Sequence record: MZ501268.1
Strand: one strand, 5' to 3'
DNA length: 64,000 nucleotides
Each line of letters opens with the position of its first letter. Within the stretch, counting starts at the first letter, position 1. The position numbers and the translations under genes are program-made. Shown here piece after piece: positions 2,698 to 54,562 of this stretch. The notes under the pieces were generated by a model that saw only the letters and a list, made by a program, of their open reading frames with translations, was not told where the DNA came from and did not search any database.

Positions 2698-2731
2698 GGT
2701 AGGCGGGAAACCGCCTACCTTGTTTATGCCC
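2698..2731 (+). terminator. Hairpin followed by TTATGCCC
   Basis: GGTAGGCGG-GAAA-CCGCCTACC, then TTGTTTATGCCC and a T-rich tract. Confidence 0.8.
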
Positions 2732-2751
2732 ACTTTATTTTTTAGTATGCC

Positions 2752-4260
2752 ATGTTAAAAGGATACCCGGTAATGATGCACGAACTCCAAGCAGCACAAC
2801 CGGCACTGGTGCAAGAAGGTGGCTTAACAGCAGTGGTGGGGAATCATGACCAGCACTTCTTTATGTTATCTCGACCACCGATCATTGCAAACGATTATGA
2901 CTTATCTATTGAAGCTGATCGTCAAGCACTGAATAACCATCTGCGTGTGAGTTATGATACGGACATGTTCAGCGTTAAGCCGAAGTGTCAGTGTGGTCAC
3001 ACCAACGGTGGGGATAAGGTTGGTAAGCTGTGTGTGAAGTGCGGTACGAAAGTCACTACCGTAACAGAAGAAGAGATTGAATCTCAACTTTGGTTACGTA
3101 AGCCGGAAGGCGTGAAAGGTTTTATTAACCCACAGTTATGGTTGTTGTTCTTCGAACCGTTTAATATCAAAGGGTTCAATCCAATGGAATGGTTCGCTGA
3201 CCGTTCTTACACCCCAGCCAAGGGAGGAATGGATTACAAGAACAAAGAGATCTATAAAGTTTGTACGGACATGAAAATTGAACGCGGCATTAACTCGCTG
3301 ATTGACAATTTTGATGCCATTGTAACCAATCTACTTAACTCCCCTGTGGTACGTGATCAGGTGACTTCTCAAGAGGTATTGAGACAGCGCTCTGAACTGT
3401 ACATTAAGTATCGTGACCGTTTCTTCTGTGAACATTTACCGATGCCATCCAAGCTGATGTTTGTGGTGGAATCCAATGCAACGGGTCGTTATGCAGCCCC
3501 TGAGATGAAACTGGCTCTGGATGCAGCATTAACCGTCTGTTCTGCAAAGCGGGATCTGCACACTGTGCGTGATGTTCGTTTTAATGAAAGCATTGCGATC
3601 AAGGTTGTCCGTCAGATCTCGAAGTTCTATTCGACCCATGACAGTGATAACTTTGCGGGTAAGTTGGGTTTACTGCGTAAGAACATTGCGGGGGCCAAAC
3701 ATCCGTGGACAGGTCGTTGTGTAATCACATCGCATACCGGTGACCATGACATGGATGAGGTTATCCTTCCGCGGTGTTTAGCGATACCGATGTTGAAGTT
3801 CCATATCCTCAACAAGCTACGCAAACGTAAGTTCACCCCATCACAAGCCCTCAAATTGATCCAGGCTGGTATTAAACAAACCATCCCAGTGATTGATGAG
3901 GTGTTGGATGAACTCCTCGCAGAAAGCCCTACAGCAAGTATTCGGGTATATGTACAACGAAACCCAACCCTGCGTTGGTTATCGAATCGCCGGTTCCATT
4001 GCCGTACGATCAACCGTGATCCAAACGACATCAGTATTCGTATCAGTACCTTGTCAATCAAATCCTCGAATGCGGACTTTGATGGTGATGAATTGAACGT
4101 GATGCTGCAGCTCGATAATGTCTCTGCGAACTATGCAGAAGCGTTTGGTTCTCACAACTGTGTACTGGACATGAACACACCACTGAAGATCTCTGGTGAT
4201 GTGGGTTTGCCAGGTACATTGATCTCGACAATGAACCGTTGGATGTACAGTAACGATTAA
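2752..4260 (+). CDS. Non-virion RNA polymerase beta' N-terminal subunit (phiKZ gp55-like)
   Basis: Catalytic NADFDGDE motif, N-terminal Zn finger CQC..CVKC, RNPTL motif. Confidence 0.92.
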   Translation: MLKGYPVMMHELQAAQPALVQEGGLTAVVGNHDQHFFMLSRPPIIANDYDLSIEADRQALNNHLRVSYDTDMFSVKPKCQCGHTNGGDKVGKLCVKCGTKVTTVTEEEIESQLWLRKPEGVKGFINPQLWLLFFEPFNIKGFNPMEWFADRSYTPAKGGMDYKNKEIYKVCTDMKIERGINSLIDNFDAIVTNLLNSPVVRDQVTSQEVLRQRSELYIKYRDRFFCEHLPMPSKLMFVVESNATGRYAAPEMKLALDAALTVCSAKRDLHTVRDVRFNESIAIKVVRQISKFYSTHDSDNFAGKLGLLRKNIAGAKHPWTGRCVITSHTGDHDMDEVILPRCLAIPMLKFHILNKLRKRKFTPSQALKLIQAGIKQTIPVIDEVLDELLAESPTASIRVYVQRNPTLRWLSNRRFHCRTINRDPNDISIRISTLSIKSSNADFDGDELNVMLQLDNVSANYAEAFGSHNCVLDMNTPLKISGDVGLPGTLISTMNRWMYSND

Positions 4261-4265
4261 TCATA

Positions 4266-4291
4266 AAGGCCAGGGGTGATTCCCTGGCCTT
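4266..4291 (+). terminator. Intrinsic terminator-like hairpin
   Basis: AAGGCCAGGG...CCCTGGCCTT immediately after the stop codon. Confidence 0.7.
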
Positions 4292-4313
4292 ATAACCGAC
4301 GAGTACATTTTTT

Positions 4314-4961
4314 ATGAGTGAATTAGTCGCTAGAGGTAAATTCATCCTCGCTAATTGTTCGGGTCTTATGGCCCCTTATCCATTCAATATCGCATTCGTT
4401 ACGACATCAGATGACTGGGATGCGGTAGTGGCTTACTTACACACAACTGACCCAGAAGAAGGATTGACGAAATACTTAGGTCACTTTGAGGAAAACCGAC
4501 AGTATGTCAGTTTTACCTGTGAAGACCAGCACTGGTATTTGGTTGGCTGTAAGATAGTAGACATTCCATACAACCACTATTATACCGGGGTGGTATTGGG
4601 TGCCGCTATGGATGTCTCTCACGATGTGATCATGAACATCAATGAACGCATTGGTAACGACCCAACAGTTGCGTCGACGACTTCTGCTATCATGCATGAC
4701 TGGTTTTTATTTAACTGGCGTGCGTCCATCGCGAATGTTCACGATACCTCCCTGGTATTTATGCCTGATGAAGATTGCGGTTATATTAGAAATAACCCAG
4801 GCGTCTTAAATCAAATCATGGCAGCCCAAGATCAACTGGGGTCTTCATTGGCGGTGACCTGCGCATTGCAACGTGAATGTCAGCGTTTGCTACACACCCA
4901 AGTAACGGCACACAACGATCACTGGAGTGCGGTGACGTATTTATCAGGAGCGATCTCATGA
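4314..4961 (+). CDS. Hypothetical protein, paralog 1 of tandem triplet (HExxH lost)
   Basis: PYPFNIAFVTTSDDWDAVV aligns with PYPRQFIFVTSAADFDEVV of 5632-6258, and the C-terminal RE...TY pattern is shared. Confidence 0.75.
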   Translation: MSELVARGKFILANCSGLMAPYPFNIAFVTTSDDWDAVVAYLHTTDPEEGLTKYLGHFEENRQYVSFTCEDQHWYLVGCKIVDIPYNHYYTGVVLGAAMDVSHDVIMNINERIGNDPTVASTTSAIMHDWFLFNWRASIANVHDTSLVFMPDEDCGYIRNNPGVLNQIMAAQDQLGSSLAVTCALQRECQRLLHTQVTAHNDHWSAVTYLSGAIS

Positions 4962-5635
4962 CCCCAGGTGAGGCACGCGAATACCTTTTCAATCATGCCA
5001 AAGATGGCGGAATCTATAGACAACGATTCCTGTTTGTCTTCAGTACAGAAGAATATGAAAAAACCATTGCAATACTTGAGATAGCGGATGGGGGTAAAGG
5101 GGCCTGGGCACGCAATAGTGGTGAATTCAAAGGTGCTGGCGTAACCGCCTATGGTCCTGTCTCAGGATTGATTGATGGGTATATTGTCGTCGGGGTAGTT
5201 GTACGTCCTGAGAATATGTTCAGTCCAGGTTATCTACAGCATGTCCTGAATACGGTCGCACATGAACTTGTCCATGCAGCGCAGTTTTCCATTAAGATAC
5301 AGAGTTACCATGATACGCTGGAATCGGTAGAGCCGATGGCTTATATGGTGGGATGGTTAATGGAAAAGTGGATCTACGCCTTGTTTGAAAAATACCGGAC
5401 TACCTTGATCATGGCACCTGCCCCGGCATTGGGCACGGGAATGGCTTACAATCTGGTATTCAAAAAGCTTTATACGTATGCCAATCAGCGGCTAATGACA
5501 CTGGCTAATGGATTAACGCCTAATCAGATGTATCATGCCTTGGCACGGGAAACCATCAACAGTTTAAACACAACGGTGGAGGTGGAGGTGGAATCTTGGT
5601 CAGCAACTACCTATTTTCAGGGAAACCATAAATGA
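4958..5635 (+). CDS. HExxH zincin-like protein, paralog 2
   Basis: Start moved to ATG 4958 (AGGAG SD, ATGA overlap). Contains HELVH followed by EPMAY. Confidence 0.75.
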   Translation: MTPGEAREYLFNHAKDGGIYRQRFLFVFSTEEYEKTIAILEIADGGKGAWARNSGEFKGAGVTAYGPVSGLIDGYIVVGVVVRPENMFSPGYLQHVLNTVAHELVHAAQFSIKIQSYHDTLESVEPMAYMVGWLMEKWIYALFEKYRTTLIMAPAPALGTGMAYNLVFKKLYTYANQRLMTLANGLTPNQMYHALARETINSLNTTVEVEVESWSATTYFQGNHK

Positions 5636-6258
5636 AGATGCCGGTTAGACAGTATGTGGATAAGTTCTTAGTAAGGCTGTCACCTTACCCTCGCCAGTTT
5701 ATCTTTGTGACTAGCGCTGCTGATTTTGATGAGGTAGTCACTGAGCTTGGTCGTCGACAAACTGAAGACGGCGTGTTCAATAAGTGGCTGACTTATAAAG
5801 GCCAGTTTCGTGGAGCGGGTATTTGTGCATCGGGTAATGGCATCTGTGTCTTGGCCGCACGGTATGATCCCAATCGTCAGTTTGATGTTAACCAAACGGT
5901 CAGTTTAATTGGTACGATGCAGCATGAGATTCAGCACATGCTACTGCATACATGCACACAGATCGGTTATAATCCGATGCGTGAACACGAACCTTTCACC
6001 TATCTGACCAAATGGGTATTTGAAATGTTCATTGGGTTTATGCACCACTACCACAATGTTCGTTTCACTAACGTTCCGTCAAGCACCGGTAAATCATTAG
6101 GTAGGTTGTACGAAGGTAATGTGTTGGTTGCATTAAATACATTGCCGGTTGATAATGCCAGAGATTCATTAGCTCGTGAATTTCGTGCAATATTGGGTAA
6201 CTCAGTCAGGATCACCGACATGGGTAATTCAACATCGATTACCTATTTCGAATCTTAA
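5632..6258 (+). CDS. HExxH zincin-like protein, paralog 3
   Basis: HEIQH followed by EPFTY; GQFRGAG matches GEFKGAG of paralog 2. Confidence 0.75.
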   Translation: MKMPVRQYVDKFLVRLSPYPRQFIFVTSAADFDEVVTELGRRQTEDGVFNKWLTYKGQFRGAGICASGNGICVLAARYDPNRQFDVNQTVSLIGTMQHEIQHMLLHTCTQIGYNPMREHEPFTYLTKWVFEMFIGFMHHYHNVRFTNVPSSTGKSLGRLYEGNVLVALNTLPVDNARDSLAREFRAILGNSVRITDMGNSTSITYFES

Positions 6259-6265
6259 TTAACCC

Positions 6266-6293
6266 GGCCAGGGAAACCTGGCCTTTTATGTCG
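6266..6293 (+). terminator. Hairpin followed by TTATGTCG
   Basis: GGCCAGG-GAAA-CCTGGCC-TTTTATGTCG. Confidence 0.7.
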
Positions 6294-6306
6294 AGAGGTT
6301 TTTATC

Positions 6307-7011
6307 ATGGGTATGTACACCGGTATTTCGTTTCGTTTAAAAGTCAGAAAGAATGCGCCATTACCCGTATTAGAATTCATGGATAAGTTTTTTATTGAAG
6401 GCGAAACGCTACAAGCAGTGAAAGACCTACAGAAAGAAACGGGCATCCAGTTCCAGTCCAAAGCCATTGCGTTGCAGGGTGATCAATTTCATTATGATGA
6501 AATAGAAGATATGTCCATGATGGTGCGTGGCCACTCTTCCAGTTTTAAAAGCTGGTACTGGCACGTTAAAGAAGATAACGGTGATTACTGGCTTTATGAA
6601 ACCCGTGCTAGTACCAAACGCCCTCACTCAGATCTCGCAACTAGTCTTATTCAAGCGTTACTGCCTTGTCTTGTTATTGAGGAAGGTGATGTGGTGATGC
6701 GTTCGATCTATGAAGAATCAGAATGTGAATGGGTCTTGGCGTTGGTCAACGGGAAAATCGTAGGGGAGAAAGGTTATCAGTACGGTGATTGGGATTCTGA
6801 TAATCCAAATATGGCGGTCGCCTCCATTGAGTATACCACTGGTAATTTCGGTGCAATTTCGCACATCCGCGTCACGGAAGAAGAAGAGTTCACACCACCG
6901 TGGACTTTACAGGAACTGCGTGCTGGTGAGGAAAAGGCAAGGTTAGAGAAAGAAGCTGAACACGACCGGATTCGGGCAGAGGGTGGTGGTTTTGGATTTG
7001 GCGGCTGGTAA
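6307..7011 (+). CDS. Hypothetical protein
   Basis: 234-aa ORF with GAGG SD, co-oriented with neighbours. Confidence 0.75.
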   Translation: MGMYTGISFRLKVRKNAPLPVLEFMDKFFIEGETLQAVKDLQKETGIQFQSKAIALQGDQFHYDEIEDMSMMVRGHSSSFKSWYWHVKEDNGDYWLYETRASTKRPHSDLATSLIQALLPCLVIEEGDVVMRSIYEESECEWVLALVNGKIVGEKGYQYGDWDSDNPNMAVASIEYTTGNFGAISHIRVTEEEEFTPPWTLQELRAGEEKARLEKEAEHDRIRAEGGGFGFGGW

Positions 7012-7040
7012 GTAACAATCAATTTAATCTGAGGTAGAGC

Positions 7041-8081
7041 ATGAAACGTTTGGAAGAGCCAGAATTCTTGAAAAGAGAATTAAAGAATGTGAATTATGTT
7101 GCTGACCTGAAAAAGGTGAATTGGTTAACTCGGTTAAATCGTGCCTTGACGGAAAAACAAGGTAAGATCATTCCTTATAAGTTCTTGTTATCTAGTGACC
7201 TGGTTGATATGTTCGACGGCGTTAAAATTAATAAATCAGACGCTACTCGTAAAGCATTCGCTGACCTTATGGAAGATCGTACTCAGGCAGCATACTACAT
7301 GTCAGTTATGTTGATCATGTGGATGTGGGGCATTAACCGTGTTGTGCATCGCATACCGGTTGAGGTTTTCAAAGCCGCTAATCAGGACTATGATCTGGCG
7401 TCGGTTCCAATCGAACCATTGTTGAAACTCCCACAGTGGACAACATGTATTGCAATGGATTGGGAAGGGGTGCGCAAGGATGACGACGGCTATAATCAAT
7501 GCCAACGCTTCATGATGTACGCACTAGTAATGCTCAACGGAAAAGAGTATCTGCAGATCGAAGTATATACAACCCGCCCCGATCATGAGATTGTACAGGG
7601 AACACGTGACCATGTCACATACTCAATTCTCATTGATACATCTATGGATAACGTTAAGGCTGGGTTCGACCAAGCATTAATAGATATCCCCAAAAACCAC
7701 GCACCTGATATTTCACAGAACATCCGTGTCGATGATAATGATGAAATGCTGTATGACCTGATCACGATGATCTCTTTGGTCAACGGCGAGCATCGTAAGG
7801 CTGAGCTCGGTAAGACCAATGTGAAATGGCCGGGCTATCAAGTCCAGGGGACATCTGGTTACAAGATCCGTCCTCGCCTGAAAGCTGTTGAGTTTATGGT
7901 CGGTGAAGAATACGTACCACAGTTGCGTCAGATGGGTGTGTCTGGTGAACGTACGCAGCGTAAGAGCCATATCCGTTGTGGACATTGGCATACCTACTGG
8001 TTGGGTCCTCGTAGTGGACCACGTACACAAGAGCGCTACTGGTTAATGCCAATTGTTGTTTCCGGTAAAGTGTCAGAATAA
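7041..8081 (+). CDS. Hypothetical protein with C-terminal HIRxGHWHxYW motif
   Basis: 346-aa ORF with GAGG SD; C-terminal RKSHIRCGHWHTYWLG...W..PIVV motif. Confidence 0.8.
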   Translation: MKRLEEPEFLKRELKNVNYVADLKKVNWLTRLNRALTEKQGKIIPYKFLLSSDLVDMFDGVKINKSDATRKAFADLMEDRTQAAYYMSVMLIMWMWGINRVVHRIPVEVFKAANQDYDLASVPIEPLLKLPQWTTCIAMDWEGVRKDDDGYNQCQRFMMYALVMLNGKEYLQIEVYTTRPDHEIVQGTRDHVTYSILIDTSMDNVKAGFDQALIDIPKNHAPDISQNIRVDDNDEMLYDLITMISLVNGEHRKAELGKTNVKWPGYQVQGTSGYKIRPRLKAVEFMVGEEYVPQLRQMGVSGERTQRKSHIRCGHWHTYWLGPRSGPRTQERYWLMPIVVSGKVSE

Positions 8082-8106
8082 TCTAATTTAAATAAAAGGG
8101 TGCAAG

Positions 8107-8814
8107 ATGAACAATATGAAAATGATGGTCGGGTCAATGTCTCTGGGTAACATGTTTGGTAATAATCACTCAGACGTGGGTTCTTTCAATCCAGCCCCGC
8201 ATGTTGATCGATTCCGTTCTGTGGGCGGGTATATTGCTGACGCCGCACTTGAAGACCGTGGCATCTTGGTTTCTGCAGACGGGATTATCGCTACCGTACG
8301 TGCAAAGAAGATCTCGTTCCAGGAAGCAGCTAACGCACGCAATGCGGCACCCGGTATGTATGCACTTATGTTTCCGGTGACTGGCGGTAAAGATACCGCT
8401 GATGCTGTTTTGATCACCACTACCAGTCAGGATGTATTGTTTAGCTTACTGGCAGTGAAAGATCTTCCTGATGAACTGATCATTCAAATGGGTCTGGGGG
8501 TAAGTACCAAAGTGGTGAAAGCCATGACCGATGGGAGTAATGACCATATTCGTGTGCTGGTTAATGCCGGCGGGATTGCCCCTGGTAACAATGCCCCGTC
8601 ACATTTAATTGTGGATAAGCAACGCAACCTGATCATCGGCCACATCGTGAAAGATGGTGATGGAGATGTATCCGGTTTTGAGATCTTCTCGAATGCACGT
8701 AAATCCAAAACATCACAAGACTACATTATCAACGTGAGTACCGAAGATAGTAATATCATCAAGCATATCGTCCTTGATGTGATGAAAGAAGTTGCATTGG
8801 GAGCGGTCGTCTAG
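8107..8814 (+). CDS. Hypothetical protein
   Basis: 235-aa ORF with AAGGG SD. Confidence 0.75.
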   Translation: MNNMKMMVGSMSLGNMFGNNHSDVGSFNPAPHVDRFRSVGGYIADAALEDRGILVSADGIIATVRAKKISFQEAANARNAAPGMYALMFPVTGGKDTADAVLITTTSQDVLFSLLAVKDLPDELIIQMGLGVSTKVVKAMTDGSNDHIRVLVNAGGIAPGNNAPSHLIVDKQRNLIIGHIVKDGDGDVSGFEIFSNARKSKTSQDYIINVSTEDSNIIKHIVLDVMKEVALGAVV

Positions 8815-8872
8815 TTTGTAATTGCAGACAAAACCGACGGATAGTATAGCACCAGCAAATAAGGATTAACCC

Positions 8873-9520
8873 ATGTCAGTTATGTCAGGCGGCTTTGGAG
8901 CCGTTAACGCACTTATGTCCTCAGGGCGTCCTACACAAGGCGCAATGGAGTACTTTAATAATCAGTATCAGGGGATGTTGCAAGCAGCACAAAACGTGGG
9001 CAGTGTGGCGATGCAGCAGATCTATCAGATCGCTACCAACACCTACGAGAACCTGATGCAGACGCGTCCATGGGAACTCGCAGAAGCTGCATTGCGTCAA
9101 ACAGTGCACATGTTTGACCCAAACACAGTTCGTCAGTTGCTGAACATCTCTGACCTGCAGACAGCAAAACCCGTCATGCAGCGTTGGGTAATGGCGCAGC
9201 CTGAGATCCGTGAGTTGTATCAGCAGCAGCGTATCGATGGTTACAGCGAAACCTATGAAGATGCGCAGCCAGGTCGGGTCGGTGCCGATCATTACGATTA
9301 CCGTCGTGCTACCAACAGCATGGTGCAGTTCAATGGTAGTGAAGAAGCGCCGATGGAATCCTGGCAGGCCGTGACCCATTACGAACGTCTGGTGGGAAGT
9401 GACCAGGAGTTGTCCTTCTATGAGAAGCGTGATATCCAGGTTACCTGGGATGCGTGTCTCAATCTGATGGCAACACAAGCGTATGATCCGACTTCTATCT
9501 TTAACATGAAGTTGGCATAA
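8873..9520 (+). CDS. Hypothetical protein, probably conserved in phiKZ-like phages
   Basis: 215-aa ORF with AAGGA SD and core-gene-like codon usage. Confidence 0.75.
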   Translation: MSVMSGGFGAVNALMSSGRPTQGAMEYFNNQYQGMLQAAQNVGSVAMQQIYQIATNTYENLMQTRPWELAEAALRQTVHMFDPNTVRQLLNISDLQTAKPVMQRWVMAQPEIRELYQQQRIDGYSETYEDAQPGRVGADHYDYRRATNSMVQFNGSEEAPMESWQAVTHYERLVGSDQELSFYEKRDIQVTWDACLNLMATQAYDPTSIFNMKLA

Positions 9521-9555
9521 ACCTATAGAGGAGGGTAACACCTCCTCTTATGCTG
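9514..9555. terminator. Hairpin flanked by GGCATAA and TTATGCTG
   Basis: AGAGGAGG-GTAACA-CCTCCTCT with the motif on both sides. Confidence 0.7.
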
Positions 9556-9569
9556 ATCAAGGATTCAAT

Positions 9570-9794
9570 ATGGCTTGGGCCAAACGCCGTGCAAAGAAAC
9601 GCTTCATCCATCTACGTGGTTTTCCTTGTCGTCTTGAGTCACGTAGCATCGTAATCTGGGAACAGCATCGCGAACAACAATCTCATCTTCTTGGGTCCGG
9701 TATCGGACTGTTTATGTTACTCGACCCTGGAACTGGTAACCCAATAGGAGCCGCCCGTGGCCTTAAGCAAAACAAAAATAAAGCGTCGTACTAA
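9570..9794 (+). CDS. Small basic hypothetical protein
   Basis: AAGGA SD; 74 aa with an R/K-rich N-terminus. Confidence 0.55.
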   Translation: MAWAKRRAKKRFIHLRGFPCRLESRSIVIWEQHREQQSHLLGSGIGLFMLLDPGTGNPIGAARGLKQNKNKASY

Positions 9795-10041: not shown

Positions 10042-10044
10042 TAG

Positions 10045-10072
10045 AAGGGACTTCGGTCCCTTTATTTTTTTT
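10045..10072 (+). terminator. Intrinsic terminator
   Basis: AAGGGAC-TTCG-GTCCCTT followed by a T tract. Confidence 0.85.
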
Positions 10073-10081
10073 GTCAGGGAT

Positions 10082-15771: not shown

Positions 15772-16542
15772 ATGGCTGGTCCACAGCGTCAATTTAAAGC
15801 TCGTGAGAAATCATACCTGAGCGAGTATTCCATGAACCTCCAAGGTCCGGTACAGCAAGGTGCTCAGTTCCCTGCTGAATTCCGTATGGCCTTTGCAGCC
15901 AATAAAGTGGCCATCCAGGTTGAAACCAAAAACCGCGATAACAAAAACAACGGTCGCTTTGAAATCGTTGTTCCTTATCTGGGCGCAATCGGTGTTCTGA
16001 ACACGATCGACAAACTGCTTAAGGACAAGAGCCGTAGCAAACTGCAGTATAAAGTGAAAGACTTCGTTTACTTCGGTAAAGGTAACAAGTCTGACAGCCC
16101 AATGATCAAAGGCACTCTGACTGTGGGTCGTGATAACGACGGTTGTCTGTACATCGGCATGTCCGGTAAAGACATCACCCCAATCAAGTTCGTGTTCGCC
16201 CTGCCGGCGCATGATGAACTGTGTGACGATCAAGGCCAGCGTCTGCCTGATTCTGAGCACTCTGAATTTGCAGCGAAGAACTTCGTTGTAGGTTACCTGG
16301 GTCTGCTGCCTGTAATCATGGGTATCCACTATACTCCACCTGAGCCTAAGAACCCAGAAGGCGGTAATGGTGGCGGTGGTGGCAACGGTGGTGGCTGGGG
16401 CGGTAACAACGGTGGTGGAAACCGTGGCGGTAATGGCGGGGGAAACAACCAAAGCCAAGGAAACAATCAGGGCGGCGGGAACGGCTCTGGTTCTGGTAGT
16501 TCCAGCGGCGGTAATAACTTCGACGATGATCTTCCGTTTTAA
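15772..16542 (+). CDS. chmC: ChmC-like nucleus-associated nucleic-acid-binding protein with G/N-rich tail
   Basis: Syntenic position just before the gp68-like gene; globular domain plus a Gly/Asn low-complexity tail ending NNFDDDLPF. Confidence 0.65.
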   Translation: MAGPQRQFKAREKSYLSEYSMNLQGPVQQGAQFPAEFRMAFAANKVAIQVETKNRDNKNNGRFEIVVPYLGAIGVLNTIDKLLKDKSRSKLQYKVKDFVYFGKGNKSDSPMIKGTLTVGRDNDGCLYIGMSGKDITPIKFVFALPAHDELCDDQGQRLPDSEHSEFAAKNFVVGYLGLLPVIMGIHYTPPEPKNPEGGNGGGGGNGGGWGGNNGGGNRGGNGGGNNQSQGNNQGGGNGSGSGSSSGGNNFDDDLPF

Positions 16543-16570
16543 CGGCGGGGACGATGAATTCACCGTAAGT

Positions 16571-16624
16571 CATTGCGTTGATTCATCCGCAATGGAGGAG
16601 GGTTCTCACCCTCCTCTTGTGCCG
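16571..16624 (+). terminator. Twin hairpins followed by TTGTGCCG
   Basis: CATTGCG..CGCAATG (16571-16594) abutting GAGGAGGG..CCCTCCTC (16595-16616). Confidence 0.65.
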
Positions 16625-16699
16625 TCCAAGGATTGGAATTTAGACCATGCTTACTCTAAAGGGTATGGGCGATTCAAACGCCGTCATTTCAGGAAGAAT

Positions 16700-16942
16700 G
16701 TGCGCAAGCGACCAGTGCGTCAGTGTAAGAATAAAAGTAAGTTGGTAAAGGTAGCCCAGAGTAAGTTGGGTTATGCACTTATGACAGGCAGGGTAGTAAG
16801 GCAGGATGTGTGTGATGAGTGTGAGGCGGATGATCGTATCGAGCCACTGCAAGTCAACTATGCTAAGCCTTATATACTGCTGTGGCTTTGTCCACGTTGT
16901 CATGCTGACTGGTATCTTACAAATGAGCCAGAGTACACCTGA
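16700..16942 (+). pseudogene. Degenerate HNH-like Zn-finger protein (may still be expressed)
   Basis: CDEC...EPLQVNYAKPYILLWLCPRCH resembles the phage HNH pattern CxxC..EAHHxDYxKPLxVxWLCxxCH but lacks the HH. A GTG start at 16700 with AGGA SD is my choice. Confidence 0.5.
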
Positions 16943-16959
16943 GGGCTCAGGCCCTCTTT

Positions 16960-17358
16960 ATGGCGATGAGAGGTAATATGTACGCTGAACCTGTGCACGT
17001 CGGGTATGCATTAATTACACGCCCTTGTGATGATGAGAAGGTAATCCTCACTCCGGTCGACTCGTTAGTCACCGCTGTCAGGCAACAGAAATACCGTGAC
17101 TTGATCGTTGGGTTGGTTGTTTCACCCGGAGCTAGTGATAATGTGATTGATGTTAATATGCATTTCTTAGGCCGGTCAATGACAGCCGGTGTTGAAGATC
17201 AGGTATTGTTGCTTTCCTCATTCGAACCTGTTGATAATGAATGGATTGTTCATCATGTCACAGGTAGTATGATAGACACTTTTGATGCAGCAGCACACAC
17301 CTACATCAAAAGCAAACTATCCGAATGGACAAGGCAGCTGAGTTTTGAAGAAGCATGA
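16960..17358 (+). CDS. Hypothetical protein
   Basis: 132-aa ORF; likely start is ATG 16978 after GAGG. Confidence 0.65.
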   Translation: MAMRGNMYAEPVHVGYALITRPCDDEKVILTPVDSLVTAVRQQKYRDLIVGLVVSPGASDNVIDVNMHFLGRSMTAGVEDQVLLLSSFEPVDNEWIVHHVTGSMIDTFDAAAHTYIKSKLSEWTRQLSFEEA

Positions 17359-17368: not shown

Positions 17369-17404
17369 GCTGGAGCGGGTAATACCACTCCAGCCCTTAT
17401 GCCG
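17369..17404 (+). terminator. Hairpin followed by TTATGCCG
   Basis: GCTGGAG..CTCCAGC, then CCTTATGCCG. Confidence 0.7.
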
Positions 17405-22175: not shown

Positions 22176-22208
22176 CGGCATAAGGAGAGGCTACGGCCTC
22201 TCCTCTTT
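22176..22208. terminator. Bidirectional hairpin between convergent genes
   Basis: CGGCATAA-GGAGAGGC-TACG-GCCTCTCCT-CTTT. Confidence 0.75.
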
Positions 22209-28265: not shown

Positions 28266-28275
28266 TAAACTGATT

Positions 28276-28333
28276 GTGTAAAAGACCGGGGTTCGTCCTT
28301 GGTCTTTTACACATCTTTTTCCTTTTCTTTTTT
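28276..28333 (+). terminator. Long hairpin terminator
   Basis: GTGTAAAAGACC...GGTCTTTTACAC (12 bp) followed by T tracts. Confidence 0.8.
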
Positions 28334-32749: not shown

Positions 32750-32960
32750 GCAACACGTCGAGCAGGCCAATCGTTATGAGGGGTCTACCGATGAATTGGT
32801 CCAACAGGTAAAAGATCGCATTGCACGGGGTGAGATTGTCTTCACTACCGGCGATGTGATTGAACCTGGTATTTGGACACCTGAGAAAATCGAAGAGTTG
32901 AAGTCTGTGCTTCGACATATTCGTGACTCAGAACAACGCATCAAAGGTGGCCAGGGGTGA
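32730..32960 (+). CDS. Hypothetical protein
   Basis: 76 aa, GTG start, coupled to the next gene. Confidence 0.6.
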   Translation: MTQDLVEQHVEQANRYEGSTDELVQQVKDRIARGEIVFTTGDVIEPGIWTPEKIEELKSVLRHIRDSEQRIKGGQG

Positions 32961-33454
32961 CGCCCTGGCTGTTATGCCAGTTAATTAGGAAAGGTAGCAT
33001 GGGAACATGTAGTATGATTACATTGGCATTATTATTCCTGGCGGGGATTCTAGGCGCAAGTTGTTGGTTCTTACGAATCGTGCAGTATGAAGCAAACCGT
33101 TACGCGATTGAAAGTGACAAAGCGTTTAAGCGGTTTTCTAACAAACTCCACAATGCCCTGGATATTCCCAAGGAACAACCACCGTTTGTGAGTAACATCA
33201 ATCAGGTTGAAGACGCACTACAGGCAACGGTTATACTTGTTGAAGAGATCTCAAATAAAATAAAAGATGAGACCTCACGTATTAAAGTTGAAAGCACCTT
33301 TATGATTGTTAGAGGTATGCAGACGGACATGCCGGTTAGAATCTGTGTAGGTAACACGGTTTTCAATTTATCTGAACACAACCACAACCACGTGGCGGTG
33401 ATCAAAACAATTGATGACCTTAACAACACATTGCGTAAAATCAATGAAAGTTAA
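32957..33454 (+). CDS. Membrane-anchored coiled-coil protein
   Basis: TM helix ITLALLFLAGILGASCWFL; start may be at 32999. Confidence 0.65.
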   Translation: MTPWLLCQLIRKGSMGTCSMITLALLFLAGILGASCWFLRIVQYEANRYAIESDKAFKRFSNKLHNALDIPKEQPPFVSNINQVEDALQATVILVEEISNKIKDETSRIKVESTFMIVRGMQTDMPVRICVGNTVFNLSEHNHNHVAVIKTIDDLNNTLRKINES

Positions 33455-34538: not shown

Positions 34539-34540
34539 AA

Positions 34541-34595
34541 CGGCATATAGGTCCTCCATTACGGAGGACCTTTTATGACACTTCTTTTTTTTTTT
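34541..34595. terminator. Bidirectional terminator
   Basis: CGGCATAT-AGGTCCTCC..GGAGGACCT-TTTATGAC plus a long T tract, between convergent genes. Confidence 0.75.
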
Positions 34596-41257: not shown

Positions 41258-41288
41258 AAAGGAGGGCTTCGGCTCTCCTTTTATGCCC
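41258..41288 (+). terminator. Hairpin followed by TTATGCCC
   Basis: AAAGGAGGGC-TTCG-GCTCTCCTTT-TATGCCC. Confidence 0.75.
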
Positions 41289-46422: not shown

Positions 46423-46476
46423 CCGCATAAGGAGAGGGCATTTGCCCTCTCCTGTTTATGCCGTCTTTTTTTTTTT
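46423..46476. terminator. Mirror-symmetric bidirectional terminator
   Basis: CCGCATAA-GGAGAGGGCA-TT-TGCCCTCTCC-TGTTTATGCCG plus a T tract, between convergent genes. Confidence 0.85.
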
Positions 46477-46978: not shown

Positions 46979-47118
46979 AAGTACGCCCTTGAGTTATTAG
47001 TGGTGCTATAAAATTACAGTCACCCCCCCCCTGCAAACTTTGCGCCAGTTTTGGTCGGCATAAGTGGAGCAGCTAAAGGGCCGCTCCGGTCCTGGTGTAA
47101 TTTCTTCATAACGGTCGT

Positions 47119-48057: not shown

Positions 48058-48116
48058 GCGATGCCCTTCTTGAATGAGTGCCATTGACAGCGTATTCGTG
48101 TCATAGGATTTCAAGA

Positions 48117-48158
48117 CGGCATAAAGGTATGGATACCCTGACTGTCGCCAAGGTATCC
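48117..48158 (-). terminator. Hairpin followed by TTATGCCG (minus strand)
   Basis: GGATACC..GGTATCC at 48131-48158, CGGCATAA at 48117-48124, after the DNA pol gene. Confidence 0.65.
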
Positions 48159-48168
48159 ACGTGGTGCG

Positions 48169-49890
48169 TCAAGCCGCAGCCATAAAGTCTATTTCGATAT
48201 GTTTTTCAACCATGAAGTCTTTCAGTAAGGTTATGGTGTCCGGTGCTTTGTACAACTTACGTGCCAGCTCACCTGCATTATTCATACCACCCGCTGCAAG
48301 GTTTACTGCCACCTGACGATACTCGGTATCATCCAATCCTTCGATCTTCGTCATTTCAATCCAGGTTGTTTGTTTACCCACATTCATAATGACAGTGCCG
48401 GTTGGGTATGCTCCTTCTACGTCAATGTCGTTCGTGCCGGTTCGTACATATGACCTGACACCCGGTAGTTCTTTAAACATCGCTTTGCCATTCAAGGCAA
48501 CCAGCTCTGTTGGGAGCATGACGATCCAACCACCCAGGCCTTGGATATGATCATCAAGATCGGTACGCATCTGATCTGATGTGGTGCCCCAGATATACCC
48601 TTCCTTCATTACATCGTAATGCATCGCCTCAGCGATACGTGTAGGCTGTGATATGAAGTTACGGTAGTCTGACACCCCGCAGAACGTTGGAACCGCTACA
48701 GAGAGGTCTGAGGTCTTCTCGTCCATCATTTCAACTACGATGCAGTCGAAGATGTTATACATCACATATTCGTACTTGTAGTTGGTCTGCATGAACTCAT
48801 GCCAGTCAGCACCATGATAACCTTCGGCTTCAGTGAACTTCATCTTGGTTACACCGAGTACTTTCTCTGCGATGTTATCCAACTTGTAGTTCAGCTCTTT
48901 ACCGTTCATGGTACGCAGATAGTAATACGTCGACATGGACTCTGCCCAGCGGAAGGAAGCCGGAGCATTGACATAGGGCCACTTCTCATAGTTAGCCAGT
49001 GAGGTCTTGGTGACTTCTTTGCCGTCGTTTTTGACTTTATGGGTTTTCCCCTCGTAGTAAAAAACGTTACGATACTCTTTCGGTACCGATGGGTCGCAAA
49101 GTACGTCAGCCGGATTGATCCCCGCATTGACTAAGGTCTGGTTCAGGATTTTGTAATCGAACTCCAACACGTTCCAGCCACTGATAAAATCAGGCATCCA
49201 CTGGTGTGCGCGTTCCATCAGTTTGACAAAGCCATCTGCAGCACTGTCAACCAGAACAAACTCAGGGGTGGTGATGTTACGGAGGGTTGCCCACTCACCC
49301 ATGTACTTGTCCCACGCCAGTTTAATTTTCTGATGAATACGCTCATCCGCTTCACCGCCAAAGTAACGACGAATCACAAACGTGAAGGTACGTTCTTTGA
49401 AGGTTAACGAAGCCATGATCGGCTCGCCCTTGTGCTTCTCATCAACCATGTCGGTTTCGATATCGAACACACTGACTTTATACGGTGTAAAGCAATCCGG
49501 GAACCGGGATTCATACATCGCCTTCACAATAGAGGAAGGTTCAATATCCGCACCGTAGACATAAGGGTTTCGACACACCCGACGCAGGTACTGGTCACTG
49601 GCACCTTTCCCCAGCATCTTAGAGATGTGGTTAGGAAGATCCCATTGTGGGCAGCTGAACTTTTGAAGTTTGGATAACTCTTCGTAGTCCTTTTTATCCT
49701 GGTGGTTCCGGTAAGCCGGTTTGGTCAGGTAGTAGTCACGCTTCATGTCTTTTATAATGCGCGTGTGTGGCGTGGAGTTCCCCGCTTCATCAATCACATT
49801 CTCTTTTACGAAGATAATGTCAGACTGACCCCTTAACGAAAGGGCATATGTCGCGTGCTTGCATTCGAAACGAAGATTCTTATTGCTCAT
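48169..49890 (-). CDS. Split family-B DNA polymerase, exonuclease-containing subunit (phiKZ gp82-like)
   Basis: ExoI FDIET, ExoII GWN..EFD, ExoIII YNIFD, PolB motif A DVEGAYPT. Confidence 0.85.
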   Translation of the reverse strand: MSNKNLRFECKHATYALSLRGQSDIIFVKENVIDEAGNSTPHTRIIKDMKRDYYLTKPAYRNHQDKKDYEELSKLQKFSCPQWDLPNHISKMLGKGASDQYLRRVCRNPYVYGADIEPSSIVKAMYESRFPDCFTPYKVSVFDIETDMVDEKHKGEPIMASLTFKERTFTFVIRRYFGGEADERIHQKIKLAWDKYMGEWATLRNITTPEFVLVDSAADGFVKLMERAHQWMPDFISGWNVLEFDYKILNQTLVNAGINPADVLCDPSVPKEYRNVFYYEGKTHKVKNDGKEVTKTSLANYEKWPYVNAPASFRWAESMSTYYYLRTMNGKELNYKLDNIAEKVLGVTKMKFTEAEGYHGADWHEFMQTNYKYEYVMYNIFDCIVVEMMDEKTSDLSVAVPTFCGVSDYRNFISQPTRIAEAMHYDVMKEGYIWGTTSDQMRTDLDDHIQGLGGWIVMLPTELVALNGKAMFKELPGVRSYVRTGTNDIDVEGAYPTGTVIMNVGKQTTWIEMTKIEGLDDTEYRQVAVNLAAGGMNNAGELARKLYKAPDTITLLKDFMVEKHIEIDFMAAA

Positions 49891-49990
49891 GTGAATGATA
49901 ATCCTATGTCAAAACACTACAATGTGCACCAGTGTTTAATACGCGTTATAACATCAGGCGTGCAACTACATTTCTACAAAAGGAGATCCC

Positions 49991-51253
49991 ATGATCCTAT
50001 CAAGCGGCATGGAAGCAATTTCATTCCAGCGTAATCCGCTTTTCTATAAACAGTTAGTGGTTGAATTCACTCGTCTGATGGAACTGGCTAAAGCCAACGG
50101 TAAAGCACGTCTTACTGAAGAGATGATGCAACAGTCTAACCTGGCAAAGATCACCATGGCGAACACCGGCATCTTGGTGTCACCTGGGGTAGATACGGGC
50201 ATGCAATGCAATGCGTATGTGCTGATCCCAAGCATTAACTCTTATCACGTCTTTAACGATCGCATGCGTCAGCTCTTTATGGGTTACGGTGAAGCCTTTG
50301 ACCTGTACCGTAAAGCCAACGATGTGTTGATCGGACTGGTTGACTTACAGAACTCTAAGGTTGGTGGTGTATTCTCCCAGGTTAATCATCGCATCTGTTT
50401 GTCGTATGACATGCTGACTGATTATGACATGACCCCGGGTGAAGTCGCTGCAATCTACATGCACGAAGTCGGCCATGCATTTACCTTCCTGGAGATGCTA
50501 CATTATACAGCGACCACCAACCTGGTGTTGACGGCCGGTGTAGAAGCGGTGATCAAAGCAGAAACTTCTCGTAAGCATGTTATCTTGTCCGATATCGAAA
50601 ACTCCTTAGGGATTAAGATTGACAACAAAGATGAACTGGTGGCTTACGACAAGTATGAAGATTATGCCGTGACGATTCTGTCAAAGTATAACCGCACGCT
50701 TGAATCTGCATTTGGCTCTCCAGCGCACGACGAGTCCATGTCAGAGCAGATGGCTGATATGTTTGCCACCCGCCATGGCGCTGGCTTGGATCTGGCCCGT
50801 GGATTGGCGAAACTGCACAAGTTCTACAAATCACAGAACCCGACCTTTGTTCGCTACTTAAATATCTTTATTGGTATTTTGGCCACCATGGGGATGAGTC
50901 TGGTAGCTGGCGTTGTCGTCAACCTTGTCGTCCTGACGGTGGGGAACTTCTTTGGTGGGACCTACGACCGTGCGAAAGACCGTTTCATCCGCATGCGTAA
51001 CGAAATCATCGTTGGCTTGAAAGATGAAGAGATCTCTGCTGCTGACCGTAAGTTACTGATTTCACATGTGGCTGAAGTCAATAAGATCATTGATCAAGCC
51101 AAGAACGAGAGTTCTTTTGTCGAGAAATTGGCATTGGTGGTACGGGCCAGTCAGCGTGAACGTTACGCGACCAAGTATCTCCAGAAAGATCTCGAAGCCT
51201 TACTTAACAACCCGCTGTACGTTAGCGCGGCTAAACTGAAAACATTGCAATAA
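49991..51253 (+). CDS. Virion head protein with M48-like metallopeptidase motifs
   Basis: HEVGH followed by EQMADMFA..HG; SGME putative maturation site; hydrophobic segment near the C-terminus. Confidence 0.7.
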   Translation: MILSSGMEAISFQRNPLFYKQLVVEFTRLMELAKANGKARLTEEMMQQSNLAKITMANTGILVSPGVDTGMQCNAYVLIPSINSYHVFNDRMRQLFMGYGEAFDLYRKANDVLIGLVDLQNSKVGGVFSQVNHRICLSYDMLTDYDMTPGEVAAIYMHEVGHAFTFLEMLHYTATTNLVLTAGVEAVIKAETSRKHVILSDIENSLGIKIDNKDELVAYDKYEDYAVTILSKYNRTLESAFGSPAHDESMSEQMADMFATRHGAGLDLARGLAKLHKFYKSQNPTFVRYLNIFIGILATMGMSLVAGVVVNLVVLTVGNFFGGTYDRAKDRFIRMRNEIIVGLKDEEISAADRKLLISHVAEVNKIIDQAKNESSFVEKLALVVRASQRERYATKYLQKDLEALLNNPLYVSAAKLKTLQ

Positions 51254-51266
51254 GGATTCATCAGAA

Positions 51267-51773
51267 ATGATTATCGATGTAGCAGAATTGAAAAAACAAG
51301 TCGTGTTGGTGCGTTCTATTGCTGAGATCCCAAGCACCCTGCGCGCCAAGCTGATTGAAACCGGTTTAGCCCGTGCTGTTGCGTATGGTGTTGATTTGCC
51401 AGCAGCGCCTGCGGGTAACCCAGTTTCTTATTTCGCAACCAATGCGACTGACGCTAAAGCGGCGCTGGCAGCGATCAACGAAACAGCGGTGATTGACATC
51501 TCCCGCATTCTGTCACTGGCCACCACGATCTGGCAGGCACGTTACACTATGGTCTTTACACCGTATTCCCGTGAAGCCCTGCAGTTAACACAGCAGGTAT
51601 TGTCAGATCAGCGTGAGTGGTTGTTCGATACAGAGCAACAGGACTTCCTGGCGTCTGCCGTAGGTGATGGCACCGTGCAGGATACCTTAAAGCTGACTCT
51701 GCTGAACTTCACCAGCCCGGCTGTGATCAGCATGAAACAGGAAGCCGTGGTCACTACGACTGGCGAGGAGTAA
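51267..51773 (+). CDS. Probable virion protein
   Basis: 168 aa within the head-gene operon. Confidence 0.7.
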   Translation: MIIDVAELKKQVVLVRSIAEIPSTLRAKLIETGLARAVAYGVDLPAAPAGNPVSYFATNATDAKAALAAINETAVIDISRILSLATTIWQARYTMVFTPYSREALQLTQQVLSDQREWLFDTEQQDFLASAVGDGTVQDTLKLTLLNFTSPAVISMKQEAVVTTTGEE

Positions 51774-51775
51774 TC

Positions 51776-53242
51776 ATGTCCATTGATTTGATTAGCTCTT
51801 TTATTGATGATAGCGGTAGCGTGCCAATGGCGGCGCTGACTGTGGTCAAGAAAGACAACGACGAGGCCAATGCCAAACTCCCTAACCAGGTGGCGGTACT
51901 CAAAGCCTCTACTGAGCGCATTGAAGAACTGCAGTCGGTATTGCAGCGGGTACGTAAAGAAGGGATGAGTCGTGAGGTTGCCCGTCAGTTATACCAGCTG
52001 GCTCCTGAAACACTCCCTATCGGTTACGGTACCGAAGGCTTCACCGAGAAGCCGTCTAAGGTCGGTCTGTCTGCAGGCCTTGAATCCATCACCGCGTATG
52101 TAATTGATGGTATCAAACGGTTGATCATCTTCCTGATCGACAAGGCCAAGAAAGCAGCGCTGTGGATTGCTGATCAGTATCGTCGTATGACCGGGATCTC
52201 TCCAACGGCGTACAAGATCGATCGTCGTGCTGCGTACCTGTCTCAGATGTCTGCACGCTTTGCTCAACACTTTGGTTCTGACCTGGCTACCTTGCTGGAG
52301 AATGAAGTCAATACCGGCATGTACGATATTGACAATGCCCGGGTAGTGTTAAGCGGTATGTTTGCAGATGCAGAAGTACTGCAGGCGGACTTGTCCAAAT
52401 ATGCTAAGCCTATTAACGCAATGTCGAAACAGATTGAAGCGTTACTGGCAGATGCCCCGGCGCGTGTGGTGCGCGTTAACGCTATTGTTAACACCATGAC
52501 CGTTGCCCGTAATGGCAATCCTGATCGCAGTGCTGAAGTGTTGCAGTTGATCGATACTCGTAACCTCGATGCATTGGTCGGTTCTCTGCGTGCCGTCAGT
52601 AAATTGCTGGCCAGCAGCCCAATGTACAAATCACCGGGCGTGGGTAAAGACGGGAAGGTTAAACAAACCATCCTGGAGCAGCTGAACAACGATGGCTTCC
52701 GTGAAATGATGTCGGGCCTGTCCATGGCTGCTAATGCCGGGATTACCCACACCATGGATCTCACGGATGCATCGGCTATCATCCGTTCTCGTAACCTGGC
52801 GCAAGCAGTAAAAGAGCTGACAGATTACGAAGAAGTGAAGAAGCGTTCGCTGGATGAGCTGAAGACAGCAACCAACTCCATCAACAGCAACAAGTACGTG
52901 CAGGCGGCTGAACAGTCTACTGGCGATGATCCAACCATGGCAGCGGTTGTGCAGTTTAACCAATACTGGGACGACATCACTACGGCGGTGAAAGTGGCGC
53001 AGGACATCACCACGTCTTATGCGGAAACCGTGTTCAAGCTGCAGTTGTTCTCTGTGCGTTGTCAGGATCTTGCTTTGGTGCAGTGGTCAACGAATAGGGC
53101 GAATGCTGGACTGGCTGAAGCCAACGCGGCAACTGAACGTTTGCAGGGTGTGATTAAACAGTACCTCGACAAGGTTGTGAAAAACACAGCCGGTGCGAAA
53201 GGTGTGCTGGATGATCTGAATAAACTGGTCAGTCAACTGTAA
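51776..53242 (+). CDS. Virion head (ejection/inner-body type) protein
   Basis: AGLE putative prohead-protease site followed by an amphipathic helix. Confidence 0.7.
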   Translation: MSIDLISSFIDDSGSVPMAALTVVKKDNDEANAKLPNQVAVLKASTERIEELQSVLQRVRKEGMSREVARQLYQLAPETLPIGYGTEGFTEKPSKVGLSAGLESITAYVIDGIKRLIIFLIDKAKKAALWIADQYRRMTGISPTAYKIDRRAAYLSQMSARFAQHFGSDLATLLENEVNTGMYDIDNARVVLSGMFADAEVLQADLSKYAKPINAMSKQIEALLADAPARVVRVNAIVNTMTVARNGNPDRSAEVLQLIDTRNLDALVGSLRAVSKLLASSPMYKSPGVGKDGKVKQTILEQLNNDGFREMMSGLSMAANAGITHTMDLTDASAIIRSRNLAQAVKELTDYEEVKKRSLDELKTATNSINSNKYVQAAEQSTGDDPTMAAVVQFNQYWDDITTAVKVAQDITTSYAETVFKLQLFSVRCQDLALVQWSTNRANAGLAEANAATERLQGVIKQYLDKVVKNTAGAKGVLDDLNKLVSQL

Positions 53243-53251
53243 GGGTATCGC

Positions 53252-54508
53252 ATGGACTCCACATTACTCGACACTGTCAGAGACACCACTGATTTGTGTG
53301 ACTCTCTGATTTCATTAGCACAACGTCTGGAAATGCTGGAACCCATTGCTGCTGAGTCCGTTAACTTCAGTAAGATCTATCACTCGATCAATCTGAAGGT
53401 GGCAAAGATTGCAGCCTCTATGGAATCAATCGGCACCGACGGCATTAACCAGCAGGCAGTGTTAGACATTAATACTGCCATGCCAGGTATCATCCCTGAC
53501 ACCATCCCGATTAATGGTTACACCAAAGCTCGTAGTAAGATGAATGTGGGCTTTGCATTAGAGGCGTTGGAAACCGGGAAAGCAGCAATGATCTCTGGGT
53601 CAGTGGCTGGCGTGATCGCAATCATTGTTAAACTGTTCCGTTGGGTGGTCATGACCATCAAGCAATACGTGAAGTCTCGTCGTGATGCCAATCGCTTAGG
53701 GATTAACGTAACGCAGGCTATCCAACGTGCAGGGTCTATCAATGAGTTTCTGTTAGAGCAGTTGGCAAAGACGCCTGAGTTGAAAGCAGCTCGCCCTGGC
53801 TTTGATTGGTTAGCCTCTATCTGGCGTCCACAAAGTGCAGTGTTTGCATTCAATGATGAAGCCCTGGTGCAATGGTGGCCAGAGCTGGTGAATGAACTGG
53901 AGTACGAGTACGACCAGATCAACACAGCGTTCGCCCATCTGCGCAAAGGCGGTGTGTTTACACCAAACATCGCTAAAGCGCATCAGTCTCCTTCGATGAA
54001 GCGTTTCTTTGAAGCACTCCCACAAGGGTGTGATCGTCAAGGTAACATCGTCGGACTTGAGCTTGCCCAGAAACAGTTTAACGAAGATCCTCAGCGTGCA
54101 TTGTTCCAGTTGGCTGAACGACTGCGTTACATGGTCAAACGTGAACCTAAGAGTAAAGGCACTGAGTTCTGTAATGAACTGATCACCATGGGTCGCTCTA
54201 TTGAAGCGTACACCAATGTTGATCGTCTGGTGTTTGATCAGTTGAACACCTATGACACCAACAACCGCTTAGGGAAGTTGGAAGAAGCCTTCTCAGGTCT
54301 GTACAAACAAGTCCAAGCAACTCGCTACACTGTTGATCAGTCAATGGTGGATGATTTCGTGTTCTTCGTGAACCGTTATTCTGAGAAGCTGAACTGTTTC
54401 GTGCAGTTGATCACCATTGTGTCTTACCTGGACAGTTGCAGTTTCCAGTTACTGGAAAACATGTCCAAAGCCACCTTGAAGTACGTAGACATTGCAGCCA
54501 GTAATTAA
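53252..54508 (+). CDS. Virion head protein
   Basis: SMES and FALE putative protease sites, then a hydrophobic helix. Confidence 0.7.
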   Translation: MDSTLLDTVRDTTDLCDSLISLAQRLEMLEPIAAESVNFSKIYHSINLKVAKIAASMESIGTDGINQQAVLDINTAMPGIIPDTIPINGYTKARSKMNVGFALEALETGKAAMISGSVAGVIAIIVKLFRWVVMTIKQYVKSRRDANRLGINVTQAIQRAGSINEFLLEQLAKTPELKAARPGFDWLASIWRPQSAVFAFNDEALVQWWPELVNELEYEYDQINTAFAHLRKGGVFTPNIAKAHQSPSMKRFFEALPQGCDRQGNIVGLELAQKQFNEDPQRALFQLAERLRYMVKREPKSKGTEFCNELITMGRSIEAYTNVDRLVFDQLNTYDTNNRLGKLEEAFSGLYKQVQATRYTVDQSMVDDFVFFVNRYSEKLNCFVQLITIVSYLDSCSFQLLENMSKATLKYVDIAASN

Positions 54509-54510
54509 AC

Positions 54511-54562
54511 CGGCATAAAGGCCTGGCCCTCCGCAAGGAAGGCCAGAGCCTTGTTTATGCCG
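54511..54562. terminator. Mirror-symmetric bidirectional terminator
   Basis: CGGCATAA-AGGCCTGGCC..GGCCAGAGCCTT-GTTTATGCCG. Confidence 0.85.

Follow-up and report, generated by a model that had tools for sequence, protein, structure and literature searches.

What is the function of the hairpin-plus-box element that recurs behind the genes of Erwinia phage AH06? The element consists of a GC-rich hairpin followed by an 8-nucleotide (nt) box, most commonly TTATGCCG, and was studied in a stretch of 64,000 nt (hereafter the window), which corresponds to positions 186001-250000 of record MZ501268.1 (275,293 bp). AH06 is a phiKZ-like member of the genus Agricanvirus that infects Erwinia billingiae, and the other phages nearest to it (RAY, Simmy50, Special G, Deimos-Minion, and others) are ~81% identical. 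As in phiKZ, split beta and beta' subunits of multisubunit RNA polymerases are encoded by the phage; its beta' gene matches the non-virion RNA polymerase (nvRNAP) subunits of the phiKZ group, and a homologue of phiKZ gp123 is also present. We conclude, with a probability of roughly 0.85, that the elements are transcription terminators, i.e. RNA 3'-end-forming signals, of this phiKZ-like jumbo phage. The pattern in AH06 is genuine but largely known, as the basic finding has already been published for phiKZ and 201phi2-1.

A preliminary description of the window had reported GC-rich stems followed by sequences resembling TTATGCC(G/C), and both the counts and the predicted folds indicate that this element is real. 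On the two strands of the window, TTATGCCG is present in 10 copies, where 1.62 are expected from shuffled sequences (maximum 5 in 100 shuffles), and TTATGCC in 18 copies, compared with 6.6 expected. At 19 sites, a stable hairpin is followed by TTATGCCG or a near variant at a distance of 0-4 nt (6 nt at one site). Folding of the 42 nt upstream of each box with ViennaRNA yielded free energies (dG) of -12 to -26.5 kcal/mol and z-scores of -2.1 to -6.7 at all 19 of these intergenic sites. Stable hairpins adjoin seven of the 10 exact copies of TTATGCCG and a dozen close variants, and no hairpin was found at the three intragenic exact copies (23374, 33833, and 50662; dG -2.7 to -6.4, z ~+0.5). All of the positions given earlier hold: exact or near-exact boxes are present at 2724, 9548, 17397, 41281, 46456, and 54555 on the plus strand and at 22176, 47056, and 48117 on the minus strand, and variants are present at 6286 (TTATGTCG) and 16617 (TTGTGCCG). 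The mirrored arrangement described for convergent junctions, CGGCATAA-stem-TTATGCCG, was found at 46423-46463, 54511-54562, and 34541-34580, but 9513-9555 is a tandem junction between two plus-strand genes, where a weak mirror copy is separated from the stem by 6 nt.

For genome-wide counts, the whole AH06 genome was assembled from the GenBank record, and genes (92.5% of the genome covered) and hairpins were called with our own heuristics. Sixty-one of the 176 copies of TTATGC lie in the non-coding 7.5% of the genome, and 55 of these 61 abut a hairpin. Compared with background, a test named in the preliminary description, the motif is enriched after hairpins: TTATGC follows 49 of 129 intergenic but only 2 of 122 intragenic hairpins (Fisher's test, 2.6e-14). 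An unbiased count of 8-mers in the sense 3' flanks of genes returned TTATGCCG as the top non-homopolymer, with 31 of its 46 genomic copies in these flanks (23-fold enrichment). A hairpin-anchored 5-mer count was dropped in favour of a windowed test, because the stems absorb the first Ts of the box. The sense intergenic hairpins are followed by the box in 56 cases, by a U-tract in 6, and by other sequences in 29, and the statement that the box occurs in place of a plain U-tract therefore stands. With a relaxed box, 65 intergenic elements were identified. Their stems are 7-16 bp long (mode 9), with 625 of 634 stem positions paired, and their loops are mostly UUCG- or GNRA-like tetraloops (UUCG 9, GAAA 9, GUUU 7, and AAAC 5). 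The 5' arms are purine-rich and Shine-Dalgarno-like (GGAGAGGGC, AGGAGG), and the 3' arms are pyrimidine-rich. In this set, the gap between stem and box is 0 nt in 40 of the 65 elements and no more than 3 nt in the rest; TTATGCCG is the commonest box (31/65), and G occupies position 8, which was left unconstrained, in 47.

When counted relative to gene 3' ends and orientation, a check that had also been proposed, the elements proved to be tied to 3' ends in the sense orientation. They are present at 15 of the 20 convergent junctions (on both strands at 7) and at none of the 20 divergent ones (Fisher's test, 7.7e-7), the divergent gaps being the longer; tandem junctions contain 37 sense and 5 antisense elements. 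Spacing on the stop codon side is tight, with hairpins beginning at a median distance of 10.5 nt (interquartile range 7-24), whereas the box is only loosely spaced from the following start codon (median 44.5 nt, interquartile range 25-89). Because a promoter and a terminator predict opposite outcomes at divergent and convergent gene pairs, this distribution speaks for a terminator. A start codon signal was also considered and rejected, as the box ATG shares an open frame with the following gene in only 5 of 36 tandem cases.

The same counts bear on a further proposal of the preliminary description, namely that the element couples a terminator to a late start site. The phiKZ late promoter consists of TATG, with G as +1 and without conservation downstream (PMC4666361), and a pocket of the beta-like subunit gp123 binds it as single-stranded non-template DNA (PMC12809450); since the box contains this tetranucleotide, the non-virion polymerase could restart where the upstream transcript ends. 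In many cases, the box does precede the following start codon by 12-25 nt, and two phiKZ late start sites, P049 and P075, are located at a second CTATG, 5-9 nt past a terminator box. In addition, of the 14 listed residues with side-chain contacts, 7 are identical in the gp123 homologue AH06_2 (slice positions 1042-2730; 26% identity overall), namely Phe151, Lys158, Lys190, His331, Ser144, Ser334, and Gln466, which may hint at retained TATG reading; Tyr stands in place of His185, and the Tyr399/Tyr406 region aligns ambiguously. AH06_171 had been considered for this role but is beta'-like, and AH06_2 is the true homologue. Nevertheless, elements are missing from all 20 divergent gaps, where promoters must lie, and are present at 15 convergent junctions, where there is nothing to promote. 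The start codon spacing is loose, and positions 6-8 of the box (CCG) are conserved, unlike the sequence past TATG in phiKZ late promoters. Among the 119 phiKZ start sites inspected (P008-P126), a hairpin-adjacent TTATG was found at none, and a few lie 25-30 nt downstream of a terminator. The phiKZ late promoter (Yakunina 2015; Chen 2026) thus shares TATG with the AH06 box but has no hairpin and no conserved CCG and lies upstream of late genes, including in divergent gaps, whereas the AH06 box accompanies gene 3' ends and is missing from those gaps. AH06 also has separate early-promoter-like sites. We therefore regard a promoter function as very unlikely, and the coupled terminator and late start site found no support in the divergent gaps, the start spacing, or the phiKZ start sites.

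The early-promoter-like sites are five intergenic plus-strand copies of cTATATTACc, which match the phiKZ early-promoter core TATATTAC. They are located at window positions 439-446 (record 186439), upstream of the chimallin-like gene (518-2665), and at record positions 58033, 67831, 141715, and 165347. One copy lies ~30 nt past a terminator element.

The reading of the elements as terminators is further supported by their relatives. The terminator consensus of phiKZ, derived from 61 terminators mapped by ONT-cappable-seq, is 5'-BCCYCCCCHWWDGGGRRGGBYTTATKYYGT-3' (Putzeys et al. 2024, microLife, PMC10914365), and TTATGCCGT falls within its TTATKYYGT portion. Motif A of 201phi2-1 (n = 59) 'strongly resembles' the phiKZ motif and often co-occurs with a second, stem-lengthening motif (PMC11512511); the combination may be read as the mirrored, bidirectional form seen in AH06. 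When published termination coordinates (preprint Table S4) were placed on the phiKZ genome, the RNA 3' ends were found at box positions 2-8 (median 6) in all 13 hairpin-plus-TTAT terminators of the first 48 kb. In uninfected Pseudomonas chlororaphis, eight selected 201phi2-1 terminators proved functional in a terminator trap, most of them matching or outperforming the lambda T0 control, which indicates that termination there does not need phage factors. The proposal of sequence-specific termination in the preliminary description is thus supported by the placement at 3' ends, the sense orientation, and the mapped 3' ends of phiKZ and 201phi2-1, but the specificity that it envisaged for the RNA polymerases of the phage is not, as the selected 201phi2-1 terminators also act in uninfected Pseudomonas, where the host polymerase is the only one present.

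All three phages, which belong to the same lineage with two multisubunit RNA polymerases, have a GC-rich, short-loop hairpin directly before TTAT-K-Y-Y-G(T), similar copy numbers (61 in phiKZ, 59 in 201phi2-1, and ~65 in AH06), and bidirectional versions at convergent genes. One AH06 element is also a positional ortholog of a phiKZ element: phiKZ terminator T025 (termination site 47888), between gp54 (nuclear shell) and gp55, occupies the same junction as the element at 2697-2731, after the chimallin-like gene. AH06 differs in host and genus (Erwinia, Agricanvirus), in arm polarity, the 5' arm being purine-rich (GGAGAGGGC) and the 3' arm pyrimidine-rich in contrast to the CCYCCCC...GGGRRGG of phiKZ, and in box position 9, which is conserved in the phiKZ consensus but not in AH06. 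RNA ends are mapped in phiKZ and 201phi2-1 and predicted in AH06. With canonical intrinsic (Rho-independent) terminators, the elements share the stable GC-rich hairpin right after the gene, the bidirectional use of palindromic hairpins, and, as far as the relatives indicate, RNA ends a few nt past the stem. The canonical signal has a U-tract of 7-9 nt, but AH06 has a specific box with just UUAU and then GCCG, and plain U-tracts follow only 6 of the 91 sense intergenic hairpins. The class II pause/termination signal of T7 RNA polymerase is likewise a short, specific sequence beyond a U-run that helps to stop a phage polymerase; however, it acts on a single-subunit polymerase, needs no hairpin, and has no sequence similarity to the AH06 box. 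A text search of the literature for the letters of the box returned only primers and unrelated matches, including a primer in a paper on the Klebsiella jumbo phage Miami.

RNA processing could produce similar maps, because termination and processing are indistinguishable in 3'-end data: transcripts might be cut or trimmed to the hairpin, or the hairpin with UUAUGC might serve as a 3' tag that a phage protein recognises to stabilise the RNA or to export it from the phage nucleus. A sequence-specific box conserved across host genera would suit a phage-encoded reader, and mRNA export is obligatory for nucleus-forming phages (PMC11077065). However, with phiKZ 3' ends at box positions 2-8, C7-G8 is mostly missing from the RNA, although an RNA tag should stay whole, and selected 201phi2-1 terminators keep a downstream reporter from being expressed in uninfected cells. 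ChmC, the nucleus-associated RNA-binding protein, was rejected as a box reader: it binds near start codons, and a binding motif was not found for it (PMC11077065). We consider processing or tagging improbable.

Several points nevertheless weigh against termination by these elements. The nanopore 3'-end maps do not separate termination from processing or trimming to the hairpin, and their resolution is a few nt. A search of sequencing runs for this DNA returned only runs of DNA type, probably the source assemblies, and we infer from homology that AH06 RNAs end at the elements. The gene calls are home-made and heuristic (333 genes versus 334 annotated, with a few disagreements). Finally, some phages with these polymerases do without the box: the samples of SPN3US, Moabite, EL, and Listeria LPJP1 described below lack it and mostly contain U-tracts.

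The elements of the window are as follows (window coordinates; dG in kcal/mol).

2697-2731, plus strand: between the chimallin-like gene (518-2665) and the nvRNAP beta' gene; 10-bp stem, GAAA loop, tgt, then TTATGCCC; dG -20.7, z -5.0.
4266-4297, plus strand: variant after gene 240; 11-bp stem, then TTATAACC; dG -20.5, z -5.4.
6266-6293, plus strand: after gene 243; 7-bp stem, GAAA loop, then TTATGTCG; dG -15.8.
9528-9555, plus strand: after gene 247; 7-bp stem, then TTATGCTG; dG -13.1.
9513-9548, minus strand: weak mirror copy at the tandem junction; TTATGCCA after a 6-nt gap from the stem; dG -13.8.
16595-16624, plus strand: variant, 53 nt past the stop codon of gene 260; 9-bp stem, then TTGTGCCG; dG -17.7.
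16941-16965, plus strand: weak candidate at the end of AH06_261, the least certain member; 6-bp stem, then TTATGGCG; dG -12.0, z -2.1.
17369-17404, plus strand: after gene 262; 10-bp stem, then TTATGCCG; dG -17.0.
22176-22203, minus strand: after gene 266 (minus strand), convergent with gene 265; 8-bp stem, then TTATGCCG; dG -14.6, z -5.0.
32948-32979, plus strand: at the end of gene 278; 9-bp stem, then TTATGCCA.
34541-34580, both strands: between convergent genes 281 (plus) and 282 (minus); stem, TTATGACA, and a T11 run on the plus strand, stem and ATATGCCG on the minus strand; dG -20.5 and -16.7.
41259-41288, plus strand: after gene 290; 9-bp stem, UUCG loop, then TTATGCCC.
46423-46463, both strands: between convergent genes 298 (plus) and 299 (minus); CCGCATAA-stem-loop-stem-gt-TTATGCCG, then a T11 run on the plus strand; dG -20.9 and -18.4.
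47056-47087, minus strand: after gene 300 (minus strand); 8-bp stem, then TTATGCCG.
48117-48160, minus strand: after DNA polymerase gene 301 (minus strand); 14-bp stem, acct, then TTATGCCG; dG -22.9, z -6.4.
54511-54562, both strands: between convergent genes 305 (plus) and 306 (minus); CGGCATAA-long stem-TTATGCCG; dG -25.2 and -26.5.

At two of these sites, terminator and stop codon overlap: the TAA of gene 247 (plus strand; 9518-9520) is part of the mirrored arm CGGCATAA, and the plus-strand box of 54511-54562 overlaps the stop of gene 306 (minus strand), for which the mirrored arm CGGCATAA supplies the TAA (54555-54557). The element at 16595-16624 sits within the annotated 5' part of AH06_261 (16526-16942; annotated as a restriction endonuclease), and the real start of this gene may be further downstream than annotated.

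The AH06 stems and their counterparts in RAY indicate at which level the element acts. In 41 unidirectional stems, 20 G-T wobbles were found versus 1 A-C mismatch, the two being scored symmetrically, whereas the bidirectional stems contain 3 of each; this excess points to a hairpin of RNA (or of the sense single strand) and not to recognition of duplex DNA. A syntenic 46.6-kb slice of RAY provided 10 positional AH06/RAY pairs, in which the box has changed at 2 of 80 positions compared with a background divergence of ~19% (P ~1e-5 by our own estimate). This conservation points to selection acting on the box. The stems of the same pairs exhibit G-U to A-U changes, a compensatory substitution, a paired indel, and one full replacement. 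A G-U pair of AH06 is A-U in RAY at 32948-32979, where RAY keeps the box as TTATGCCG, and at 41259-41288, where the box is identical. A T-A to C-G change in the stem is compensatory at 34541-34580 (34549-34580), one G-C pair is gone from both arms at 46423-46463 (46430-46463) with the box kept, and a different, unalignable stem precedes the same TTATGCCG at the place equivalent to 47056-47087. The box is also kept at 54511-54562. After the helicase gene, RAY (slice positions 2530-2566) has a hairpin and TTATGCTT, whereas behind the orthologous AH06 hairpin (28275-28313; 17-bp stem) the box is degenerate (TTTACACA) and T-rich sequence comes next; the box seems to have decayed or been turned over here.

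These comparisons also bear on an element acting at the DNA level, i.e. a palindromic protein-binding site or a selfish repeat, of the kind of repetitive extragenic palindromes or miniature inverted-repeat transposable elements, spread through intergenic regions. Some stems do recur (GGAGAGGGC/GCCCTCTCC ~10 times), and some copies are perfect palindromes with mirrored boxes. However, most elements are unidirectional and strand-specific relative to the upstream gene, the 20-to-1 preference for G-U over A-C is not a product of double-stranded DNA recognition, and the divergent gaps are without any element. In addition, the stems are diverse in sequence, and at fixed positions those of AH06 and RAY show covariation. 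An origin of this kind appears extremely unlikely.

If the elements are terminators, the transcript leaving a gene would fold into an RNA hairpin with a GC-rich stem of 7-16 bp, usually closed by a stable UUCG- or GNRA-type tetraloop, and transcription would stop within the 8-nt box TTATGCCG, which would stand in for the usual U-tract. At convergent pairs, one palindromic hairpin with the box on both strands would stop traffic from both sides. The UUAU segment may provide a short, weak RNA-DNA hybrid beside the hairpin. The conserved C6-C7-G8 is probably read by the polymerase as DNA rather than RNA, because it lies mostly beyond the mapped 3' ends, and it could constitute a pause of the pyrimidine(-1)/G(+1) type. 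We are far less sure of these mechanistic details than of termination as such. One tentative version, which we consider unlikely, is that the phage polymerase reads the box as DNA, the late-promoter TATG pocket in its beta lobe catching the TTATG of the box during elongation and CCG serving as a downstream pause signal. If true, a promoter-recognition device would have been reused as a sequence-specific stop. Such reuse would explain how a short box can replace the U-tract, why conservation extends past the mapped RNA 3' ends, and why chimallivirus lineages are split between those with the box (phiKZ, 201phi2-1, Agricanvirus, Goslar, and Proteus phage 10) and those without it (SPN3US, EL, and Moabite).

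The spread of the element among jumbo phages was surveyed in samples of ~42 kb around the nvRNAP beta' gene, in which hairpins followed by TTAT(G/A) were compared with the chance expectation.

AH06: 15 observed, 1.9 expected.
RAY: 10 observed, 1.7 expected.
Proteus phage 10: 14 observed, 2.5 expected.
Goslar: 9 observed, 1.9 expected.
KTN4 (phiKZ species): 10 observed, 1.9 expected.
Vibrio Aphrodite1: 9 observed, 1.4 expected; mostly TTATA or TTATT forms.
Ralstonia FLC4-11C: 5 observed, 1.7 expected; including two clean TTATGCCGT copies.
Salmonella SPN3US: 1 observed, 1.8 expected.

The enrichment in Proteus phage 10, Goslar, and KTN4 spans a genomic GC content of 37-50% and different hosts. 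The signal is missing from the samples of SPN3US, Serratia Moabite, Pseudomonas EL, and Listeria LPJP1, in which U-runs dominate or no clear signal is seen; in the Moabite sample, TCTAT, CTATT, and CTATG follow hairpins instead. The box, present in some sampled lineages and missing from others, is therefore lineage-specific among jumbo phages with these polymerases. The same 8-nt box occurs in Pseudomonas, Erwinia, Escherichia, and Proteus phages and is missing from others with the same two polymerases, and because of this restriction it offers a good handle on how the non-canonical RNA polymerases of jumbo phages terminate. For AH06 and other Agricanvirus phages, the ~65 elements amount to a map of transcription unit ends derived solely from sequence. 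In addition, they bring minor annotation problems to light, and they could serve as compact terminators in the engineering of Erwinia.

The T runs noted at 34541-34580 and 46423-46463 (34581-34591 and 46466-46476, respectively) belong to a wider set of T9-11 runs, usually preceded by TC, that start ~2-7 nt past the box. The genome contains 22 runs of at least nine Ts, without exception on the plus strand. On this strand, they follow 7 of 10 convergent-junction elements and 4 of 36 tandem-junction elements, whereas none follows any of the 19 minus-strand elements. T runs after the box are visible in RAY and phiKZ as well, and at phiKZ T019, the one terminator checked, the mapped RNA end precedes the run.

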